From Asterias rubens (Eukaryota), in NCBI RefSeq assembly GCF_902459465.1, contig NC_047081.1, positions 5,456,001 to 5,520,000 on the forward strand: DNA of 64,000 nucleotides, given 5' to 3'. The first letter of the stretch is position 1, and every line of letters starts with the position of its first letter. The translations under genes were made by a program, and so were the position numbers. The notes under the pieces are model-generated. The model was given only the letters and a program-made list of their open reading frames with translations. It searched no databases and had not been told where the DNA came from. Shown here piece after piece: positions 2,019 through 17,697 of this stretch.

Positions 2019-3844
2019 ATATAGATCTGTAATATGAAAATGCATCAAAAGGGAAAAAATTTTAACCTAAAAGCTAAATAATTAACATCTTTCAAAGCAT
2101 TTCACAGGCACTTCTGGTTAAGACAGGTCAAAAGGTCAAGAAAAGGTCATTTTTACATTGACTCTCCCTATGCACTACCAATTGGGGAAATACAGAGTTC
2201 TTGATTATTAATATTTTAAATTTTCAACTTCTGGGTTGAACCGTAAGACATTTAAGGTCAAATTGGGGGTATGTCAATGACTTAAAGGGGCAAAAAAATA
2301 ACTAATCATGTAATGAAGTTGTTTTCCATTACTAGCATAGTATTCTGTTTTTATTAATTTTTTAATATATTTTGAATGGTCTGTTCTTATAAGACAAGCA
2401 ATCTTCTTCAGCATTGCAAAACTATCGAATGTGATTGATAGCCTTGTTTTTTTCTTTACATGTACATTAAATTTACTTTTTTGTTTGGGGGGGGGGTGTT
2501 TGCTGGCCTCTTTTTGAGTATTGAAATGTGTGATCACATTTTAAATCATTTTAGACTACATTTTAAAGTACCGTACATTGTTTTTTTCTTCTTCATATTT
2601 TATAGTAGGGATCACATTTTAAGGTGTTTGGTTTGCGCAATCTTCAGGCTTCTGTTTGATTTGTGATACAAAGTCTTTTTATCTGTCTTTCATGATTAGG
2701 CACAGTTATTAAATAAATAACGTCCATGTGAACTACAAAAAGTAAAAGCACAGTACTAAATAAATTATAAAAAGAAGTACTCACATGGTAACAAATAATT
2801 ACAGGGGTAAATAGTGAACAAATATAAAGACATTGTTAATGCATTTACAATGGTTCTTGAGAGGGACACAAGATGCATTTATATACAAACTGAAAAGTTA
2901 TACAATGCACAAAATATCGTGTGTCAGTTATTTTCTTTTGACAAACAAAATTTTATGATTCTAGAGAGCTCAAGATTACAATTTTTGATGTTTTGGTTTT
3001 ATTGTTTTTTTATATTCAAATTTTAATTCTTAGAAAAATGAGATGATCCTACACAAAACAAATTTCACTGCTCAGGTTATGTGTGTATACGTTTTTGAAA
3101 CCGTTTGTTATTTGTGTGTAGAGTTTTACATCTTTCATTTTAATTCTCAATTTTACTTAAAAAAGAAACTAATGAAAAAATTGCTAATTGTCTCGGTAAA
3201 AAACAAGCAATTGCATCTTTTGTAGTATTGTACATTGTAGTTACATGTACATACCTACATTGTTTTGGAAAAGGTCAAAACTGCAAGCTTTAGACAGTGC
3301 TGTTCTTTTTTTATTATAATTTTCAGGCACTGTGTGAGGTTAACACTAGTTATAAAGAGCTCTGTGGTATGCATCGAGGTAGGCCTACGTATACACGTAG
3401 TATGCATTGAGGTATAAAGGCTTATTACGCACTTGTACCTGAATTTCTGAACTAATAACTGCATGACGTGCAGTAGATTTGAATGAACCTTGGCCCCAAA
3501 ATGACTTGTATACATTCCATTCAGCTACACTTACATGTACATGGTACATACTTGTACATTAAATGTTTGGATGCTTCATAATCAAATAGGGTGCATATTT
3601 CATATGCGTGTAGTAAGGCTGCAGTATAAATGTAATGTACATGTATTCAATTCAGTTCAATTCAACGCAAATTTATTTTTCATGTTGACAAGGACAATTA
3701 AACATACAGTTGAAAACAAATAACAATATGTTATTTTGAAAAGAGATGGATACCACATAATTCAACATGCTGGGACAAAGTTTTGTTTTGCTTTTGTACA
3801 TTTCCCTTTGACAGACAAGGACTTGGACACGAAAAGGATAAAAC

Positions 3845-4780
3845 CAGGGGCGTCAATCCGTCTTGAAAGGTGGGGGGGGGGGAGGGGGGGGGGGACATAA
3901 CATTTACGGCGGGGGAATTTTTTTAGCCCGTAGATCATATGCTCTCTGGTGCAATCTAGTGAATCTGAGGGGTGATGTTCCCCCCTCTCAGATGTTGGAA
4001 TTTAATGCCTTTTTCAAACTACGATGCACCTATTCTTGCTATCATGGTTATTGTACCTTAAAAGCAACTCATTTATAGCGTTGTTATACCCATATTGTTT
4101 CTGCATTCTAATGCTCAGATGGCGTTTCATCCCTTTCATCACCAGACCTAAGAAATATGTTTTATGGGGCAAATCTGTCAGAACTTCTGTAAAATGTGAG
4201 CAGCAGTAGAACCTTTTGGGTTGACAGCATCTTCAAGTGCGGATCTATGAACCAAGTTTTAGGGGGAAAATCTGTCGAAGAGTGAGCTCATGAGTGCAAA
4301 ACCTTTACGGCATGGGTCCGATTTTCATGATAAAGGTGGTCAAAGGACACAGGGAACATTTGATACTGTGTCCCCCACCCTTCAAAAATGGGGTGAGTGG
4401 TGTTGGGTACACGTCCCTTCAACTCTTGCAAGGGGAGGTGCAAATCTGTCACGATAGAGCATGCATCCAAGAAGCCGTTATGGCATGGGGTGCGGGCCCG
4501 ATTAAGGGCCCGGGAAAATTTTACATTTAGATGCTCTGTGATGCAATCTGGGCCAATTTTGAGGGGGATATTGTGTCATCCTTTGCCCACAGGATTAATG
4601 CCCATATAGGGACACAGGGTTTCATCTTACATTGTGCAAAACTTGGGATTCATGATAAAGGTGGTCAAAAAGGTGGGGGGGGGGGGGGGGACATTTGATA
4701 TTGTGTCCCCCACCCTCCAAAAGGTGGGGGGGGGGACATGTCCCCCTGCCCCCCCCCCCCCCCTCTGATTGACGCCCATG
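3845..4780. mobile_element. Non-autonomous hAT-type element, 936 bp
   Basis: TIRs caggggcgtcaatc / gattgacgcccatg (13 of 14). Perfect 8-bp TSD GATAAAAC at 3837-3844 and 4781-4788. G/C homopolymer-rich interior, no ORF. Confidence 0.85.
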
Positions 4781-6865
4781 GATAAAACAATGACATGGAC
4801 CAGATTGGTCAGTATAAATAATTATCAAAACAACAGTATTTGTACATTTAGTGTATTAAAGAGGTGTCGTTTCAGTTTGTTAGAGAATGACATGAGTGAA
4901 CAAGCCTTTTTAATATCAGAGTTGAGCAAACTAGGATATGCATGTTACAGCATTTCGACACCTTGTTTTTGACAACAAACTTAAGTCTAGTTTTAGTACT
5001 TCTTCTTCTGCTAAGAAGTCACTGCTCCCTTGTCCGCGAACAAAAGCACCCTCCTAAAGCTCATATGAACTTCACACAACGTTAGCTATCTATTAGGAGA
5101 TGAAACCGTTTCAGTTAATACGTCACCAGGTGTCAAGTTACAAGGTTTTAGAGACGATTAGAGGTTTTACAACGATTAGAGACCTTGGGTTGCTTTTGGC
5201 GGAATTTTACAACATTATACAACCTTGTGTGACATCTACTTCCTTATAATTTAATACTGGCAATATATTTTTGGAGATGTTTTCAATGGTGTTATAGTCT
5301 GGCAAAGGTCTAGCTTAAAAAAGAAGAAGAAGCTGTGTCTGAAGTGGTGGCTATGGCTGCGGCTACGACCGTTGCCAGGTGTGTTGCTAAGGGCGTCCTA
5401 TACTTCAATGCATGACGACGCGGCGATCCAGCCTGTCTGTAGCCGTAGCCTTAGCTGCCAATTCGGATACGGCCTAAGATTGATGATGTCACTAAATTTA
5501 AGGGCGCCCTCTAGCAGCAGATTAAAAACATTTCAAAATACACTTTTACTAGATGTCCGTGGCAGAGTTTATGATACATCTTTTGGTGACAGTTTTTATT
5601 CTTTTGTTTTAACCTTGACAGCCCCTGTACAACTTGTAACTATTGTGCATGTCTAAAGATTTGAAATAAATAAAATGAATAAAATACATAATTGGGCCGA
5701 ATTCATAAAAAATAGCAATTGCTTATACAAGCACAGGCACTAAACAAAAGCAAAAGTTCATAGGCAGAAGCTGAAGCAAAAGCAATTGATTAAATTTGTA
5801 TACAGGTACATAACTTTTTGCTTTTACAAATTGCTTTTCCTCAAGGTAGCCCAGCAATTGCTTGTAGTTTCTTGTAAGCGCTATTCATGTGCAATGAAAC
5901 ATGCGTAAATGTGGAGCTTAATAGACGCAGTTTTGTAAAGGCTGCATAGAGTTGTGATCAAAAGGTTGTCAAATGTGATCAAAAAGAGAGTGCAGCTTTG
6001 GTCAAAATCATCTAAAAACATCCTGTGCTACAACTTATGAGAAATCTCAACCACCGAGTAGCAAGGAAATAGAAGGCATCTCAGGGTGCCAAAGCAACAA
6101 CCTTCGACCGTCAAGGGTTACGATCATCAATAAATCCAAAACTATAGCAAAGGCAAACAAGTGTTTAAATGGTGCTTTTACACCTAGAAGAAAAATGTCA
6201 GTTAGAAACAAAAAATGTCGGGCATTAGGCCTAATGAGCCAATTTCAAATCAAGGGATAGGCCTAATGCAACTGTGTGCATTTAAGTGATAGTGAATCAA
6301 GTCAGACAAATCCAACCTCACATAAAGCTGGGCTCATATTACTCCTAGAAGTATGTGCGTTCCGCTATCGTTTGTTCCGAAACGAACCTTGTAGTTCTAG
6401 TTGAAGTAGTCTCATACTTCCTTCGAATGCAAATGCAAAGTGGATTTTGGTGAGGCAATATGTAGTTTGTAAGGGCTGCCCTTCAAAAAGTGTGACACAA
6501 GAAAATTGATGAAATAGCAGGAAGAAGGATCCCTGCATAACAACAAGTTTTGAGTTAAGGTTTGTTCAGAGCAAATTAAGTGTTCACAAACTATACAGAT
6601 TCAATCAATATAATCAAGATTCTCTACACTCGCCACTTTGTGACAGTTACCCAATGACTTTTATCAGTGGCAAACGCTTGGTTGTATCATGGTGTTGCTC
6701 TAGTTTATTCATGGAGGAAGGAAACCCACATTCTGCTGAACAGAAGCACCAGAGCTTGAGTTTGGTGATCTTACGTGTACGTATGTATGTTAAACTTTAA
6801 AAGTTTCCACGAAGTACAAATTCCTGGTTGATATTGACTTTTTTTCATCTTTAAATCTGTTACAG

Positions 6866-7033
6866 GATCCTCGATTCAATTGTGAAATTGATCTGCAAAC
6901 AGGGTACAAAACAAGAAGTATGCTGTCTATGCCCATCAAAGCCCCTCTAGGGGAGGTGATAGGTGTGGCGCAGGTCATTAACAAGATTGGCAGTAAAGAT
7001 CGGCATGAAGCTTTCACAGATAGTGATGAAAAG
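6866..7033 (+). CDS. Exon of a GAF-domain cyclic nucleotide phosphodiesterase (PDE5/PDE11 type), GAF-A C-terminal part
   Basis: tacag|GAT acceptor and AAG|gtaatt donor; 168 nt, phase 0-0. Translates [56 protein letters not shown], with the GAF signature D.RFN..D..TGY.T...L.MPI and the NK...F...DE motif. PDE5 versus PDE11 orthology cannot be resolved by eye. Confidence 0.93.
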
Positions 7034-7485
7034 GTAATTTAATTGTTACATTTATGTACATTGTGAAAGATTGAACAACTGTGTTCGTATTCAGAAAATA
7101 ATTTTGGCGTGTTGTGGCCAAGTGGTTGAGTGCACTGGACTTAATTATAATAATAATAGGGTCTTTCTACAGTAAAGGGTAATTGAAGCTTTGTGCTCCA
7201 TTTGTCTGTCAAAATGTTACGTGGGTAATTTCCAGCATGGATGTACTAACAATTTTTTAAAACTTCTACATGTTTGAAGTGTAGGCCTTACCAAACCTAC
7301 TTACAGGGCAAAATTTCATGGTTCTCAAAAGTCTGCGCTCACGATCACCATTTTCCGCTTACTGTGCAAGCGCGGAATATAATGTGCAAGCTTGGAAGCA
7401 CACAAACAAAAGAAATCCCTGCTAAGCAGTCTATTTTGCTTGACGTTAGCGCATAATTCACTCCTTCTGCAAGTTCCCATCATGA

Positions 7486-8382
7486 TAGGCCTGGGTGACA
7501 AGTGAAATTTACTACTCGACTAGTCGCACCTCAAACCTAACTACGACACTTGTCGAGATAAAATACGGATTCTCAAGATTTGTGCCGCTATGTGCCGCAA
7601 GGGCAATATTAATTATGTTGCGAATGGGTGACTAGTGAAATTTACTACTCGACTAGTCTCACCTCAAACCTAACTCTGACACTTGGCGAGATAAAATACA
7701 AATTCTCAAGATTTGTGCCGCTATGTGCCGCAAGGGCAATATTAATTATGTTGCGAATATTAGTAAGCAACACAACTGGTTCACCAAACAGGTAGTCGGG
7801 ACAAATATTTTAGTCAATGTGTGGACACGATTATGAGTAGAGAAAAACAGTAGTCGCGACTCAAATAATAGAGAGGTTTCGCAGAGTCACAGATACTCTT
7901 ACGTGAACGGATACGTCATAATACGTCATCACTTGTTGAGGTCCATGTGACGTATAACTGTTGTACACAAGTTAGAATAGTCGCTCAAAACGGGAATCTG
8001 TCGCCATACACGTAAGTAAACAACGAGTATATTTTGTTCATGTTTTTGTAGCGGATTGTTATTTTTTAATGTACCAGGTTTTCACCATGTCTATTATAGG
8101 TATCATACATGGATGTAGTTGGACATGTTGTTACCCACCATGCTTCAGAAAAAGAGAAATGGCGACCCCCATGGGCGCAGCCATTTGCTTAATAGCTCCC
8201 TCTGGAGCCTCAAGTTTAGGGTATTCGTTAGAATTTTGCGAAACAAAACTACACAGCTCACTTGACGCGAACGCGTACGGTTCAATATCTGTATACGTAT
8301 TCGAATCCGCGACTCTGCGAAACCTCTCTAAAAATTTGTAGTCGCGACTTTAACACTAAAGCACACTAGACGCCCCGGCCTA
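7486..8382. mobile_element. MITE with TAGGCCTGGG-type termini (hAT-like), containing a 133-bp tandem duplication and a nested MITE
   Basis: Ends taggcctgggtgacaagt / actagacgccccggccta. Units 7493-7625 and 7626-7758 are duplicated. Paralog at 22444-22749. No TSD found. Confidence 0.65.
7869..8330. mobile_element. MITE with 20-bp perfect TIRs
   Basis: tagagaggtttcgcagagtc ... gactctgcgaaacctctcta; absent from the paralogous host copy near 22690. Confidence 0.8.
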
Positions 8383-9575: not shown

Positions 9576-10369
9576 GCTTCTAATTACCATATTAATTGAC
9601 ACGTGATGACGTCACAGTATCAAAATTGTGTTTTTCATACTAATAAATTTCATAAGGTACACGATGGTATGTAATGTAACTTATCCCAATCCAGTGCCTT
9701 TTCAAAAACCCTATTAGAATGACGTTCTTTTTAACGAAATTCCTAAACGTACGTAGGAAACGTAAGTAGGCCTATTGGTTGTGTACAAATCCAATGGAGT
9801 GTGTACAGAGTAATAAGTCCTGAACGCGGTTAGAAAATAAATAAAAAAGATGCCAACTTCAGGACAGCGTCGTAGACTCCCCACAAGTAAGTCCTCAACC
9901 CAAGAGTCCTCACTGTGTTGCCAGAACTATAGAAAAGGTGAAACAATGTCATGAATAGTGTCAAGTAAAGTGACTACATGTACATCCACAAGTACTATGT
10001 TGTACCCATTCGGCCAAGATTTTAATTTATTCGTTAATCATAGACGTATCATGATAGCTTTTAAGGGACTGAAACATATGTTATTAGGATCAGTGTATTT
10101 TTAAACACAGACTATCAAATTTAGGAAACGAACAGATAAATTATTTTGAAGTTATTGTGTTTTTGACCATTTTAATGTTGACATTTGAAGAACCATTGTG
10201 TTTGTGCACAGACACAAAATGTGCAATACCTGATGTCATGGTGACGTCGTCAAAGATTTTATGCCGGCTATCACCTTAACCGGACCCAACTAGTATAGCT
10301 GAAAAAAGTTTCAGGATCGGTGGTGTATATTTTGAGATATGGTGTTAACTAGGTTTGCTAATTAAACTA

Positions 10370-10511: not shown

Positions 10512-11404
10512 GTATCTATGCATTTCGTGAAGTCAGAGCGGGCCGGTGCTTGCGTAAAGAGCCGGCCTTGGACAAGGCTAATTTCAAGGCAGTTTTCACA
10601 AAGCTGTGATTGCGCAATCATGGCACAATTTGCCAACTAGCCATTTTGTGTCGTAATTTCCACATAAAACCAATAGTTGTGAAAGTAAAAGCTGGACTAG
10701 TTTTGAGATGTGCCCCCTTTCATCATATCAAAAGTTGAAAATAATTAGACAGTGCAATCTCCATATATAAGATTTTATGTTTTTTTCCATTGAGGTGTGT
10801 ACAAATCGTGCCTGTAGGTGTCTAGGCTCTTTGGTTCTTTTGATGTCAAAGGTCACACCCTCTATAAACCCGCTTTAGAACACGGCCCAGCTTGATGCTT
10901 TCAACCAACTCTGTGCATACAATCGCCATTCTCAGCTTCCTGTGCAAGCTCTGAAAGTGAAATATTTGCGCAGGCTTCGAATCAATGATTACGATGAGTT
11001 TCCCTGCGCACATGCAAAAATATCCCTTCCAAGCAATGAAATGCACTTTAGGGAGGACCTTGTATTCTAACAAGCGGTAATACCTTGTTGTACCGCGGTG
11101 TACACGAGGTATTGAGCTGAAGGTATTACTTGGCTGTAATGAAATTATCTTCGGGTCAATGCACACCACTGCATTTCGTCACACGCATATTCATGACCGA
11201 ACCCAGGCTGGCCAGTCAAGGTAGAGGCACAAAGGGACCAATTTATATGACCTTAATCCCCACTAATCTGGGAGTAATCTAACAAAAGGGTGATAACACC
11301 TCGTTTAGCAGCCCCTGAGTTTGAAAATAACACCCAGTTGCAATAGTTGTTGCCCATGTCCTGCCTGTTATCCCTGTTCTGAAAAATTTTCAGTCTCATA
11401 ATAT

Positions 11405-12108
11405 TATTTTCCTCGTCCTGGGTTATTTCCCCCTCCCAGGTTTATTTCCCTTAATATTTTTCCGTCCCGGGTTGTTTCCCCGTCCCAGGTTTATTTCCCT
11501 TAATATTTCTCCGTCCCGGGTGGTTCCCCGTCCCAGGTTTATTTCCCCTAATATTTCTCCGTCCCGGGTTGTTTCCTCGTCCCAGGTTTATTTCCCCTAA
11601 TATTTCTCCGTCCCGGGTTGTTTCCCCGTCCCAGGTTTATTTCCCGTAATATTTCTCCGTCCCGGGTTGTTTCCCCGTCCCAGGTTTATTTCCCCTAATA
11701 TTTCTCCGTCCCGGGTTGTTTCCTCGTCCCAGGTTTATTTCCCCTAATATTTCTCCGTCCCGGGTTGTTTCCTCGTCCCAGGTTTATTTCCCTTAATATT
11801 TCTCCGTCCCGGGTTGTTTCCCCGTCCCAGGTTTATTTCCCGTAATATTTCTCCGTCCCGGGTTGTTTCCCCGTCCCAGGTTTATTTCCCTTAATATTTC
11901 CCCGTCCCGGGTGGTTCCCTGTCCCAGGTTTATTTCCCTTAATATTTCCCCGTCCCAGGTTTATTTCCCTTAATATTTCCCCGTCCCGGGTTGTTTCCCC
12001 GTCCCAGGTTTGTTTCCCTTAATATTTCTCCGTCCCGGGTTGTTTCCCCGTCCCAGGTTTATGTCCCTTAATATTTCTCCGTCCGGGGTTGTTTCCTCGT
12101 CCCAGGTT
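11405..12108. repeat. 49-bp minisatellite, about 14 units, subterminal in the Zator element
   Basis: Unit gtcccgggttgtttcc(c/t)cgtcccaggtttatttccc(c/t/g)taatatttctcc; period 49 (e.g. 11561 to 11610). No unique spacers. Confidence 0.95.
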
Positions 12109-12261
12109 TTCTTGAATGCAGTAATATTTCCAATATAATCCAATAAATTCAAACAATTATCATTTCTTCTCAGTATCATTACTTCTCTGTAATGCCTTAC
12201 AACTTTATTTATTCTTAGCCAAGTCAGATACCAAAATATCATCACATATTCCTTGCTTTCA

Positions 12262-13815
12262 TTAATCCAGTAATGGACAGGTACCCAGACTCTTCTCCAT
12301 GAAGGACGGCATGGTACAAGTAGTGGTCTGATTTTGGACTTGACACGTCTCTAAGTAGGTCATGAAATGTCCGGGATAAACTGTTGAAGGAGTTGGTGTA
12401 AGCAAGGGACCCTTGTTCTCGCGGATTGTCTTAACAGCTTGGACAGCTCGGACGGGATGAGTTGAGCAGTGGAGGCAAGTGTCCTTGTCACACTTCACGA
12501 TACATAGTTCTCTCGGTCTCTTGTGTAAATGTTGGATGGCAAAAAGCAATTCTTGATGAAGTTCATCATCTTCCGTAATCTTTGCTTTAGACCCAGATGA
12601 GATGATTTTATGCACAGTTTCATAATCGTCATATGGTGCTGATTGCCTTCGGCAAGGTTGGTGACTTGAAGAGATCTCATGTCCATCGAACTTCCGGCCA
12701 TTCCAAAAAGCATTGATCTCTTCCATAGCGTTGTCAAAAACCATGGCTTCCTTTTCTGCTCTTTGGTCCGAGTTGAGTCCCGACTGGACAGAGGGCGGCT
12801 GCGTCTCCCCGTCTAATGTGCTTCGAAGTCTTACTGATGTGAGCATTTTGCTCAGAGGAGCCCATCCATGCTCTATGGGGTTCGATGCTGAATTTTTGGG
12901 TGCATATTTGGTTAAGCACAGAAAATCCAGGTCAACTAGGCGAAGGAGGCGAGACAAAAAGACTGCAACTGTCCACGACGATTCGTTCCAGTCGGGTCCC
13001 CAATCAACAACGAGCACTGCCCCTGTCTTTCCTTCGCTGGCAGAATTCTCCAAAATAGGAAGAAGATCGTTTATGTGTTCTTGAATCGTCATCTTGTGAA
13101 ACTTTTGAGATCTGTTCACAATATGCATACGGCCAGTTCTCGGTGTGTATAGATGGCTGCGCCCAAGTTCATCTTGTACCTCTGTCGGTGCATCGCTCTT
13201 CTGCTGAAGCTCCATGTACCCACATGGAGTGATCAGGTATCCAGATCCTTGAGGAAAGTCATGATCTGGGTAGTTTGGGGAGTCGTTGATCATGTGGACT
13301 TTCTTTACTTGATGGTACCGACTAACTGCCATACCGCCAACGTGTACTTTGTTCATGCAGTCACATGATAGAGCTACGACTTCGTTGGAAAACTGAGCTG
13401 CAAACTCCAGGCGGTACTTTACCCTACAGCTACAGTAGTGGGAGTCCATGTGGAAAGCACGCTCGTCATTCTTCTTAAGGGCCACTTTAGCCTCGATCAA
13501 CCCTTTGTAAAGTTTTCCCGACTTTCGATGTTTACTAGGTGGTGCCATCAACCGAGAGCAAGTGGTCGTACTGATGGACATACCGGTTATCTCCGTCTCA
13601 AGGTGTCTCTTTAGGGAGGGGATCGACGTTCTGCATGCACGACCCACACTTGATCGGCGCCGTGAGTCTGCAGCGTAGCTTTGTTGAGTCACGAACGCAG
13701 TTGCCGTTTCCACAACCTGAGGGAACTTCTCGTGAAGTGGTTTACGACCAGCTCCTTTCCGTGGGCAGTTGTTCTTCTTCCTGAAATCTTTTCCTTTCCG
13801 GAATGGAGATGGCAC
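12262..13815 (-). CDS. Zator-type DDE transposase, main exon (open frame)
   Basis: Uninterrupted ORF with SCDCMNKVHVG..AVSRYHQ, PDHDFP, VVDWGPDWN and YAPKNSASNPIEHGWAPLS, giving a D/D/E triad in Zator-like context. Acceptor ttttcag|GTG at 13815, phase 0. Confidence 0.8.
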   Translation of the reverse strand: MPSPFRKGKDFRKKNNCPRKGAGRKPLHEKFPQVVETATAFVTQQSYAADSRRRSSVGRACRTSIPSLKRHLETEITGMSISTTTCSRLMAPPSKHRKSGKLYKGLIEAKVALKKNDERAFHMDSHYCSCRVKYRLEFAAQFSNEVVALSCDCMNKVHVGGMAVSRYHQVKKVHMINDSPNYPDHDFPQGSGYLITPCGYMELQQKSDAPTEVQDELGRSHLYTPRTGRMHIVNRSQKFHKMTIQEHINDLLPILENSASEGKTGAVLVVDWGPDWNESSWTVAVFLSRLLRLVDLDFLCLTKYAPKNSASNPIEHGWAPLSKMLTSVRLRSTLDGETQPPSVQSGLNSDQRAEKEAMVFDNAMEEINAFWNGRKFDGHEISSSHQPCRRQSAPYDDYETVHKIISSGSKAKITEDDELHQELLFAIQHLHKRPRELCIVKCDKDTCLHCSTHPVRAVQAVKTIRENKGPLLTPTPSTVYPGHFMTYLETCQVQNQTTTCTMPSFMEKSLGTCPLLD

Positions 13816-13994
13816 CTGAAAACAAATATGTGTGGTGATCATTAATTAAACTGTTGTTTCAAAATAAAAAGGGAATACTTAAAATAAAATAAAAGATAAT
13901 TTAACAATTTTGAGGATTCAAGGTTCTCCTTAGGCTTAACGTTTATGCGGGCGCTAATCAATCCTGCATGATCGTCATATTTCACGCACGATCG

Positions 13995-14150
13995 CCAAAT
14001 TGCACAAATCATAACTGCACCATTGGCATATTGCGCACATTATTACTGCACTATCGGCATATTGCGCACACTATTCCTGCACTACAGGCATACTACGCAC
14101 ACTATCACTAAACTATCGGCAAATTGCGCAATTTATTACTGCACTATCGA
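13995..14150. repeat. About 31-bp tandem repeat, about 5 units, in the predicted transposase intron
   Basis: actgcactatcggcatattgcgcacactatt repeated with divergence. Confidence 0.8.
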
Positions 14151-14428
14151 CTCAATTGAGTCTTGGATACAAGGTTCCGTTCATCGGCTAAAAATGTAGT
14201 CAGGATGCCCTGCGACACAGAGCAAAATTCGCTTGCAGGTGCAGGTACCAGTGAACTATAATTCCAACATACAATTTCAATGGACACCAGCGATTATTTT
14301 TGCGTTTGATTGTGGATTGTGTGGATACCAAAATGCGGGTTTTTGTAACTATTATTGCGTAAATGGGCATATACATGTACACACACACACACACACACAT
14401 ATAGTCTGAGCTTTTTTCCATAGCTTAC

Positions 14429-14551
14429 CTTTCCGGGTTTGAAGACGTAGTGATTCTCATCATCGCTTTCGCCAAACAGCCACGAGTCGTTTGAGCTATC
14501 AAGGGATGGATCAAGCAATAAATCTAAAAAGTCGTTGTCCATTTCGTTCAT
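14429..14551 (-). CDS. Predicted first coding exon of the Zator transposase (acidic N-terminus)
   Basis: ATG at 14551; 123 nt MNEMDNDFLDLLLDPSLDSSNDSWLFGESDDENHYVFKPGK; donor AAG|gtaagc in phase 0, matching the phase-0 acceptor at 13815. Spliced product 558 aa. Confidence 0.55.
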
Positions 14552-15038
14552 TCTGATCAATATCTGCCAATGTTATAAAGGTGAACTATATACTTCAGAA
14601 TAAATCGAAACTATACTTTAAGAGATGATGTGTACGTCTGTTCGCTTTATCAATTTAATGATTTTGATTCTTGCAGAGGTGTTTCTTACTTGATATGGTC
14701 TAGAGAATTACTAAGCAACACAAGATTCTACAGCTAATCACTGATCTTTCTTTCCCATCTGGAGAGTGCATCTTTCTTTATTGAAAGCGGTCCTTTTGAC
14801 AAACCGTGTGGTCAAGCGCAACGCATCTTAATCTATAAAAAGTAGCTTTCTTGATCGGTGGCTGTTTGAGCCAATGATCACACTTGACACTATTGTCAAT
14901 TTCATCGCATACTCTCCTGATGACACCATCGACTAGGCATTTTCACTTTATACAAAAGTTCCTTCTACTCAAGACGCATTTTTGTTGTTGAATTTATCCT
15001 CCAAATTCTTTAGCACATCCAAAGATCAATCATTCATC

Positions 15039-16120
15039 ATGGACACAGGTTAGTACGATTTATAAGTTTTAAAGTGTGTATATAATTTTTGGTGGAATTT
15101 CTATTTCTATATAACCCAAATAATGTACATTAAAACATAACCAACTTGGAGGCTAAAACATAAATGACGCGACTTCCACAAATTGTGGTGTCTATACTAA
15201 ATTTGAAAAATAGTCCATACAGTTTATAAATAATTATTTTGTTTTTACCCATACACCGATGAGTGTTTATCACTGTATATACCCAGTAAAACCCAGAATG
15301 AACCCGATGCAAATTTTCCATCATATTTTAGTATTTTAATATTTATGTATGTTTTCTGCTTTTCTTATTACAGCAAAAAGACCAAGATTGGTCGACGAGT
15401 CATCCGACAGCGAAGACGATGCCCCACTCGCCTTAATTGCCAATGACCGATCCCTTACTGGAAAACAGCAACATGGGCGGGATACCCAAACCATCATTCA
15501 ACTGCTGATGGAGATTCGCGCAGAGCAGGAGAGACAAGCGGCGATCTTAGACGAACAGGCCCGTCTGCAAGAAAGACAGAGCAACGAAATCCAAAATTCA
15601 AAATGTATCAGCAACCGTCTCCAACATGTACGGCCTGCTCAGAGGACGCATTGATAAGAGAAGTCGTCTCACCAGCAACGAACCCCAACCAGACAACGAA
15701 CCCCAACCAGACAACGAGAAGACTACATCAGGGTTGACGAAGGCCGTAGCAGACCTGGCGGACGGGTTTGTGTCCATCCCCATCCGGCATGAGGAGTACC
15801 GGCCAGGGGTGGTGTACGAGCCGGTCGGGATTCCTGCTGATGACTATACATCGATCCTTAATCGGTCAGCCACGGCACCTACCTTCGTGCGGGGATTAAT
15901 GCCATATTTTTTCGAGAAAGACGTTTTGAGAAGATCAAACTATGAAGGTACCACTGTACTTAGGCAGGACCAAGAGCCATTGAAGAAGGACAAACTTGAC
16001 CGGCGGCTTGTTATGTCCCTTTTGGACCAAGCGGAGCTAGAATATTCTGGTCATGTTTTTGATCGGAAGTCGTTCTCCAAAATACGGGCCTCAATTAATG
16101 ATAAATGTCGCCACACCTGA
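15039..16120 (+). pseudogene. Spliced coiled-coil + BEN-domain gene, frameshifted by a 7-nt duplication
   Basis: Exon 1 ATGGACACAG|gttagt (15039-15048) and acceptor ttacag|CA (15374) are both phase 1, giving MDTAKRPRLVDESSDSEDD. Removing tcaaaat (15598-15604) fuses both track ORFs into 249 aa. C-terminus FVRGLMPYFFEKDVLRRSNYEG...KLDRRLVMSLL...KIRASINDKCR matches the BEN pattern F.R.L....F....L..S...G....LD....I....IN.KCR. Confidence 0.78.
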
Positions 16121-16382
16121 ACAGTATTCTTAAACATCTCTCCAGGCCAACTTTGTAAATATTTTGATAATGTTTGATTTTTTTTAATTCGTAGACTGGT
16201 ATCTAAATCATATCGATTGAGTTGTAGACAAAAATGGAAAAGAGTAATGATGCAATAAACATCTTATCGTGGCAATTAAACAAAATGTATAGAAAGGCAG
16301 TGTTTGTTTTTTGTCTATATATTTATTTAATTAATACTTATTTTAATTTAAGTTCGGATAATAATGCTGGTTAAATTTCCCT

Positions 16383-16650
16383 AGAATTTTCTCAGTCCCG
16401 CCCATAATATTACGCCCTCCCGGGTTTTCTCAGTCCCGTCTCTTGTCCCGAATGTTTTCAAGGCCCGGTTTATTTCTAAGTCCAGTATTATTTCCCCGTA
16501 TGCATACTTATTTCTCAGTCTCGTAATACTTTGCATGTCCCGTTTCCTGTCCAATAATATTTCCAAGCCCGGATATTTCTTCTTCCTAAATATTTTTCCG
16601 CGCCCGGTTAATTTTCAGTCCCATATTAAATTCCCCGCCCTCTAATATTT
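16383..16650. repeat. Degenerate GTCCCG / TAATATTT repeats at the right subterminal end of the Zator element
   Basis: ctcagtcccg, tgtcccg, gcccgg and taatattt recur, in the same orientation as the left 49-bp array. Confidence 0.6.
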
Positions 16651-17697
16651 ATCAGTCATGCATCTTTGTTTGTTTAGGTTTGTTTAAAGGGGGAGGTTTT
16701 AAGATAGATTTGTTAATGTTTTATTTAAGAGACATTACATTTCCCCGAAGGATACCAACGCTAAACAAACAATAAAACTTAGCAAAACAAACAAATAAAT
16801 ATAAAAAATAATATAACTTGTCAATCCCATGTCGAGAAAGATTTTACTTTAAAAACATGTATCACTTTCTGCCTCTCCAGTTTATGACGTTTATGGCTGT
16901 AAGCCAATAATCCCTCAATCCCCCTTAATCTCATAACAATAGCGCTCGAAGGTGGACTGGTTTAAGGATTCTCTCCCCCTCAAGTCCTTTCATCAAGACG
17001 TCTATTGTGACGGCGCAGCCATTTTTAATGAGCCTCACTCTCCTCCTGTTTGACCTCTTGAATACGGAGTATTCATGAACCACAAGATTTCCATTCATAA
17101 AACCTTGTGATGGCAATACCTTGTTGTACCTTTTGTACACCGTGGTACAACAAGGTATTACCGCATGTTAGAATACGAGGTCCTCCCTTATGTAAGGGCA
17201 CAATTTCCACGCTTCTAAAGTGTAAATTCTTTGATTACGGTGAATCAGAGTCATTAAATTGGGCCATACAGTTTCACAAGATAGTTTGTACACAACAAGA
17301 AATTTCACATGTTTGAAGTGTACATGTAGGCCTACAGCAATCCTACTTATTACACATGCGCTTACGTTCACCATTCTCCGCTTAGGGGGCCTACTGTGCA
17401 TGCGCGGAATTTAATGTGCAAGCGCGGAATTTTTAGAAGCACACAAACAAAATGAATCCCTGCTAAGATTTGTACGCTTTACGGAACCTCACAATTCAAA
17501 CGCTGGATCTTTGCTTCCAGAGCAGAGCAATTTGACATTGGGTCTATTTGCACAGGATTTGTTCATGTGAAGCTGATGACTAGGGTATTTTCCTACTTGA
17601 CTATTCGCACCTCAAACCCAACTATGGCACTTGTCACGATTAATTTTTGATTCTAAAGAATTGTGGCTATTTCTGCCGCAAGCACATAATTAATTAA

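Follow-up and report, generated by a model that had tools for sequence, protein, structure and literature searches.

We analyzed a 64,000-nucleotide stretch of the genome of the sea star Asterias rubens (the window; C21:5456001-5520000 of a 417.6-Mb genome), in which a 6.1-kb DNA transposon occupies positions 11051-17187. The element fits the Zator superfamily of cut-and-paste transposons and contains two genes, a DDE transposase on the minus strand and, head-to-head with it on the plus strand, a gene whose product is modeled to end in a BEN domain. Comparison with other copies and other genomes showed that transposase and BEN gene have stayed together, and have diverged in step, in sea stars, a sea cucumber, and a hemichordate; their association is a conserved two-gene design, not a one-off capture. 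The window copy itself is a decaying member in which both genes are defective.

The element is bounded by a TTA target-site duplication (11048-11050 on the left and 17188-17190 on the right), as an earlier reading of the window, here called the original prediction, had stated. The same reading gave the terminal inverted repeats a length of 54 bp; the inverted repeats are present, but they extend to ~61 bp, with three mismatches among the first 54 positions. The left repeat (11051-11111, plus strand) starts with GGGAGGACC and includes the motif AATACCTTGT at 11077-11088, and its partner lies at 17127-17187 on the minus strand. This 10-bp terminal motif (AATACCTTGT / AAGGTATTAC) is found three times in each end. 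At the left end, two inverted copies (ACGAGGTATT and AAGGTATTAC, 11104-11129) bring the total to three, while the three copies at the right end (AATACCTTGT/ACAAGGTATT, 17099-17160) include a 19-bp palindromic pair (17112-17130 and 17144-17162). Also inside the element is a 49-bp tandem array of ~14 units (11414-12109, plus strand) with the core CGTCCCRGGTT, which occurs 29 times in the array, always on the plus strand, and 30 times in the window against ~1.2 expected. Degenerate units of this left array, with a GTCCCG-type motif, were found at 16367-16640 on the plus strand in the same orientation as in the left array.

The transposase is encoded by an open reading frame (ORF) on the minus strand (12262-13842) that is open over 526 aa. 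A predicted splice with a canonical donor (AAG/gtaagc) and acceptor (ttttcag/G) joins exon 1 (14429-14551, 41 codons, with an acidic N-terminus) in frame to exon 2 (12262-13815, 517 codons and a stop) across a GT..AG intron (13816-14428), all on the minus strand, and yields a product of 558 aa. Exon 1 has a counterpart with a 59% match in a related copy on C18, and a candidate AATAAA poly(A) signal lies downstream of the stop codon (12208-12213, minus strand). The catalytic residues D193, D312, and E356 of this product (D152, D271, and E315 in exon-2 numbering) are invariant in the 48 relatives over which the transposase family counts were taken, with the second D and the E 43 residues apart and the E within an NPIEHxW motif. 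The frame was open as predicted, but the protein stops at ...GTCPLLD, ~25 residues early, and is missing the C-terminal C2H2 finger of the family, which is kept in 8 of 10 aligned relatives; the remaining two are cut short before the finger. The intron contains a 31-bp tandem repeat (13986-14149, 5.3 copies) and a (CA)n run (14376-14399). An exhaustive profile search with the transposase returned 3,956 cluster representatives. In some long relatives (P0023-P0154), the predicted protein also includes kinase, SAP, Ulp1-protease, DOT1, or 7TM domains, perhaps through fusion of gene models or through domestication.

To place the transposase in a superfamily, we compared the window protein and its relatives with Pfam and NCBIfam. 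Pfam gave no match on the window transposase, nor did PF07592 find one when the genome was searched in all six frames; the assignment to a family came from the relatives and from NCBIfam. The NCBIfam ISAzo13 family matched the window transposase at E 2.3e-4 and 21 of the 48 relatives (best 7e-10); IS630 came second, with 7 relatives, and IS256 gave a single match. PF07592 matched 12 relatives, one of them above the cut-off (P0005, 31.1 bits versus 26.9). This entry is the Pfam form of the ISAzo13 family and was reportedly once named "transposase 36" (TP36) in the original Zator description. The predicted structure of the transposase (mean pLDDT 71) found its best Protein Data Bank (PDB) matches in the Mos1 mariner transposase. 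The element thus shares with Zator the TWA (TTA or TAA) duplication, a kinship to ISAzo13/TP36 that rests on weak matches in which this is the leading transposase family, and a DDE triad on an RNase H fold of the IS630-Tc1-mariner group. According to published work, Zator descends from TP36 and clusters near IS630 and Tc1/mariner (PMC7386202), and amphioxus Zator-1 makes 3-bp TAA/TTA duplications (PMC12905397). Zators such as Zator-1 of Branchiostoma likewise have terminal inverted repeats and a DDE transposase related to ISAzo13 and then to IS630 (PMC12905397, PMC7386202); the window element differs in its conserved BEN second gene and in the length of its inverted repeats (~61 bp versus 33 bp).

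The TP36 kinship together with the 3-bp TWA duplication fits Zator and not Harbinger, and an ISAzo13 (TP36)-derived Zator fits the data when the comparison is made with published descriptions of Zator rather than with Repbase reference sequences. That reliance on descriptions is one argument for another placement, either as a PIF/Harbinger-type element or in an undescribed superfamily of the IS630-Tc1-mariner group; others are that TWA duplications and two genes are classic Harbinger traits and that the window's own protein matches ISAzo13 weakly by Pfam and NCBIfam. We nevertheless consider such a placement very improbable, since neither the Harbinger domain (DDE_Tnp_4) nor a Myb/SANT partner was matched by Pfam in the window proteins or the 48 relatives, the transposase matches of note are to ISAzo13 and IS630 save for the one to IS256, and both the NPIEHxW motif and Mos1 as the nearest structure speak against it. 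The concern that the transposase might belong to another superfamily with a known second ORF was not borne out.

The second gene begins across a divergent intergenic region of 487 bp between the two ATGs (14552-15038), a distance that agrees with the original prediction and is 512 bp in the C18 relative; the region is presumed to be a bidirectional promoter. Exon 1 (15039-15048, plus strand) consists of the ATG and 7 nt, ends in phase 1 at the donor CAG/gttagt (15048/15049), and is followed by a 325-bp intron (15049-15373) with its acceptor at 15373/15374. Of the splice sites first proposed, those of the transposase (14429/13815) proved canonical and in frame and those of the BEN gene (15048/15374) join in phase 1, and the mini-exon structure of the BEN gene is repeated in C18. 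The N-terminal part of exon 2 (15374-15604, plus strand) encodes a basic KRPR patch, the acidic serine motif SSDSEDDAPLALIA, and a heptad-like Gln/Glu-rich helix. This helix is a putative coiled coil, as judged by its sequence and by the weak matches of some relatives to coiled-coil-type families (BAR, Suppressor_APC, FOXP-CC). The C-terminal part of exon 2 (15605-16120, plus strand) lies in another frame and encodes a Pro/Glu/Gln linker with an 18-bp coding repeat (15671-15717), followed by the BEN domain (~15752-16117); a candidate AATAAA poly(A) signal is found at 16254-16259 on the plus strand. The BEN linkers of relatives have their own, unrelated short coding repeats (AQPADM in C18 and DEARPTSAAQPDPAEPP in the hemichordate Ptychodera).

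The change of frame within exon 2 is caused by a 7-bp duplication (near 15596-15604, plus strand), where ATCCAAAAT and ATTCAAAAT, two overlapping 9-mers, stand 7 nt apart and IQN is encoded in two frames. Up to ...SNEIQN the protein is read in the frame of 15349-15654 and from VSATVSNMYGLLRGRI onward in another; the C18 protein, which is intact here (...MHELKNVKAVSSNTYGLVKGRI...), served to locate the break. The predicted BEN gene accordingly holds up in its domain, seen in the fold, but its frame is not open in the window copy. Contigs of three other sequencing runs retain the frame break and miss 17 nt at 15671, within the 18-bp repeat, and no unbroken version of the window BEN gene was found among the sampled runs. 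Runs X1, X2, and X3 behave as DNA, because their contigs cover the introns. In a contig of run X7, guessed to be RNA, the match begins at 15372, beside the predicted acceptor at 15374, and the first 126 nt are nowhere on the stretch; predicted BEN exon 1 is therefore unconfirmed.

As a test of the identity of the C-terminal domain, the window protein was searched with the Pfam BEN profile (PF10523). A match was present, as expected from the original prediction, but at E 0.099 and 13.3 bits it fell below the cut-off of 23.2. Relatives of the protein matched the same profile in five of seven cases (best 4.8e-5), with scores of up to 22.3 bits that are consistent with a BEN domain and still below the gathering score, and BEND6 and BANP were the only PDB sequences picked up by a profile search. 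The AlphaFold model of the 15626-16117 product has a pLDDT >90 across the BEN domain, and the top 19 Foldseek matches in the PDB are all BEN domains (BANP, Bsg25A, Insv, NACC1, BEND6, and BEND3) at a probability of 0.99-1.00. On the strength of the modeled fold, the C-terminal domain of the second gene is soundly a BEN domain, with a sequence match that is sub-threshold. It shares this fold with cellular and viral BEN proteins (BANP, BEND3, BEND6, NACC1, Insensitive, and Elba/Bsg25A), with TM-scores of 0.52-0.67 normalized to the solved chains. Those proteins are host chromatin and transcription factors or viral proteins, whereas the protein described here is encoded by a mobile element, beside a transposase, and has marginal sequence similarity to them. 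Some cellular BEN proteins have a coiled coil or oligomerization region upstream of a C-terminal BEN domain.

Evidence that the element has moved comes from its derivatives. A search of the whole 417.6-Mb genome revealed no second full-length copy of the window element at the DNA level, only derivatives: an internally deleted copy of 992 bp on C11 flanked by TAA/TAA, an internally deleted copy of 574 bp on C15 flanked by TTA/TTA, and a truncated copy on C19 that terminates in TAA. A contig of run X1 has the same deletion joint as the C11-type derivative (12268 joined to 16851), and a contig of run X2, which is labelled as a second organism, has the right end of the element on another flank, starting with TAA. 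From the derivatives at other loci and the other flank in the X2 contig, we conclude that the window element has moved and makes 3-bp TWA duplications, with three independent insertions (window TTA, C11 TAA, and C15 TTA).

One relative of the gene pair is on C18 (L055). There the transposase, on the minus strand, is 69% identical and has one internal stop codon, and the BEN ORF, head-to-head with it on the plus strand, is intact over at least 249 aa at ~50% identity. The C18 BEN gene has the same mini-exon layout (16 nt) and a phase-1 intron (342 nt) with the acceptor at the same codon; no inverted repeats were found around the pair.

A second family, whose transposase is ~35-38% identical to that of the window, encodes a 619-aa transposase and a 293-aa coiled-coil/BEN protein. 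Its copies on C4 (L058, C4:10735000-10744999, with the element at ~3484-8195), C15 (13343717-13347212 and 12538209-12541659), and C43 (74312-77809) are 97-100% identical to each other, with the genes head-to-head and ~760 bp apart. This is a recently active two-gene family. Its right end is scattered over the genome in >25 copies, and its left boundary, at L058:3484, is common to seven copies; no inverted copy of the right end was found at the left boundary. The BEN gene of this family is also present on C5, where only the C-terminus of the transposase is retained, and on C15 and C6, where no transposase match was listed beside it. Decayed head-to-head transposase/BEN pairs were found on C2 and C8.

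The pairing is also seen outside sea stars. In the sea cucumber Holothuria leucospilota (L062, CM055974.1), a transposase of 45% identity is head-to-head with the gene of a 390-aa protein that likewise combines the acidic motif and the coiled coil with a BEN domain (Pfam E 1.7e-4). In the hemichordate Ptychodera flava (L067), a convergent gene encoding KRKR and SSELSEDDD as well as a repeat linker and a BEN domain (E 1.6e-21 with our own BEN profile and 6e-4 with Pfam) lies 2.2 kb from the transposase XP_070560361.1. A 3.7-Mb metagenomic eukaryote contig from ENA has the two genes in tandem, with the BEN ORF on the strand of the transposase and 3.9 kb downstream of it. At the Holothuria and Ptychodera loci, terminal inverted repeats were not seen, and subterminal repeat arrays only were found. 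Those of Holothuria are arrays of ~50-bp repeats in opposite orientation that flank the gene pair (2095-4452 and 11441-12754 of L062), and they point to an element >10 kb long whose subterminal arrays would hold binding sites. The BEN proteins of these two species have an extra N-terminal segment (Holothuria ORF 6392-7564, minus strand, ...VLAKWRSSGRSYKARLL...; Ptychodera 12789-13097, minus strand, ...VRVKWRKSWYKANVL...), which looks Tudor/Agenet-like by eye and has no Pfam match.

Taken together, C18, at least four second-family copies, Holothuria, Ptychodera, and the metagenomic contig all show the pairing, which disposes of a single capture as its source. Nor is the BEN gene a nested insertion, as no inverted repeats or duplications flank 15039-16260. 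The BEN ORFs are intact in most lineages, and the pairwise identities of transposase and BEN protein correlate (Spearman 0.78 over six elements, to be read as a trend and not a formal test, the pairs being non-independent). Matches to either BEN query occur at only ~30 places in 417 Mb, and repeated chance adjacency is therefore negligible. The genome also contains solo BEN genes of the same family with no transposase in the fetched flanks (C15:11077324-11077686, C8:12488095-12488457, and C19:8343435-8343794; L059, L060, and L061; frames of 191-315 aa), which may be decayed elements or domesticated copies.

Since the pairing is conserved and the genes co-diverge, the dedicated accessory role that the original prediction gave to the BEN protein is plausible, its function being argued by analogy. 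We hypothesize, at slightly better than even confidence, that the BEN protein would be an element-encoded, sequence-specific DNA-binding cofactor of the transposase. Solved BEN domains bind specific DNA motifs. As a coiled-coil oligomer, the protein could recognize repeated motifs within the element, and candidate sites are the AAGGTATT(AC) motif, of which each end has three copies, and the subterminal repeat arrays of the window element and Holothuria. Binding there might help the transposase to find and pair the ends, as En/Spm TnpA and the Myb-like protein of Harbinger do, and the BEN protein may also modulate the divergent promoter. The comparison with PIF/Harbinger, a working analogy, rests on the TWA duplication and on a transposase with a DNA-binding partner; the transposase families are unrelated, and the partner is Myb/SANT there and a BEN fold with a coiled coil here. 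TnpA of En/Spm (CACTA) is likewise a second element protein that binds repeated subterminal motifs and oligomerizes, and the window element has arrays and triplicated terminal motifs. The two proteins are unrelated in sequence and fold, and TnpA is an alternative splice product of a single transcription unit, whereas the window element has two separate genes.

Several observations weigh against a conserved pair in which the BEN protein serves the transposase. A 5'-truncated second-family transposase copy on C17 is without BEN, and a search next to the relatives in Mytilus (L063) and on two ENA contigs (L064 and L065), where the loci are interrupted or of uncertain completeness, turned up no BEN gene; the partner is either clade-specific or losable. 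Gene order differs by lineage (divergent, convergent, or tandem), and there was no RNA support for either gene in the runs compared, none of which is on record as RNA. The 49-bp array is missing from the short derivatives and is therefore dispensable for mobility. The transposase moreover has an N-terminal helix-turn-helix-like region and zinc-binding motifs of its own, so that a partner is maybe unneeded for DNA binding.

These DNA-binding motifs of the transposase equally favor a role for the BEN protein as a regulator, either a sequence-specific repressor or insulator of the element promoter or a shield from host chromatin silencing. Most of the characterized BEN proteins matched (Insv, Bsg25A/Elba, BEND3, BEND6, and NACC1) are DNA-binding repressors or insulators, and the echinoderm pairs share a divergent intergenic region of 487-760 bp. 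No repeated motif was noted in that region, however, and the divergent layout is absent from Ptychodera and from the ENA contig, which speaks slightly against a common promoter as a strict requirement. We regard a purely regulatory role as rather unlikely, and the regulator and cofactor roles are not exclusive, as TnpA of En/Spm does both. That the BEN gene is instead an anciently captured host passenger of no use to the element seems improbable to us. Capture of host fragments by DNA transposons does occur, and the solo BEN genes at C15:11077324, C8:12488095, and C19:8343435 would suit such an origin, but a neutral passenger should decay, whereas full-length ORFs and the domain order are conserved down to 16-28% identity in two phyla, BEN co-diverges with the transposase, and the exon-intron structure is common to the window and C18 copies.

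Returning to the cofactor role, we propose a broader form of it only tentatively, as doubtful on present evidence: a Zator clade, dating back at least to the common ancestor of echinoderms and hemichordates, would need a BEN cofactor that binds AAGGTATT-type end motifs. If this were true, BEN would be a transposon-borne DNA-binding module, and some solo animal BEN genes, including the transposase-less copies described here, would be domesticated second genes of transposons.

The two-gene design of Zator and BEN is apparently undescribed. A full-text literature search, with the original Zator description and the Repbase notes outside its scope, returned no paper that combines Zator with a BEN domain, although two of the papers returned for BEN and transposases concern the bacterial Tn3 transposase; the literature searched describes no eukaryotic DNA transposon with a BEN second gene, and the Zator literature examined makes no mention of a second gene. 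Zator is among the least studied superfamilies of eukaryotic transposons, and a conserved second gene alters how autonomous Zators are annotated and reconstructed. It would join Harbinger (Myb) and En/Spm (TnpA) as a further example of cut-and-paste elements that leave DNA recognition to a separate protein. The BEN domain, known earlier from chromatin factors and large DNA viruses, is now tied to transposon biology, which offers a testable route to the origin of some animal BEN genes.

Two further repeats were noted in the window. A ~40-bp segment within the BEN intron (15224-15269) is extremely abundant in all four runs, with summed depths in the thousands, and probably belongs to a short repeat of very high copy number. 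A dispersed repeat close upstream of the element, at 9596-10344, has 76% identity to the flank of the C4 copy of the second family.

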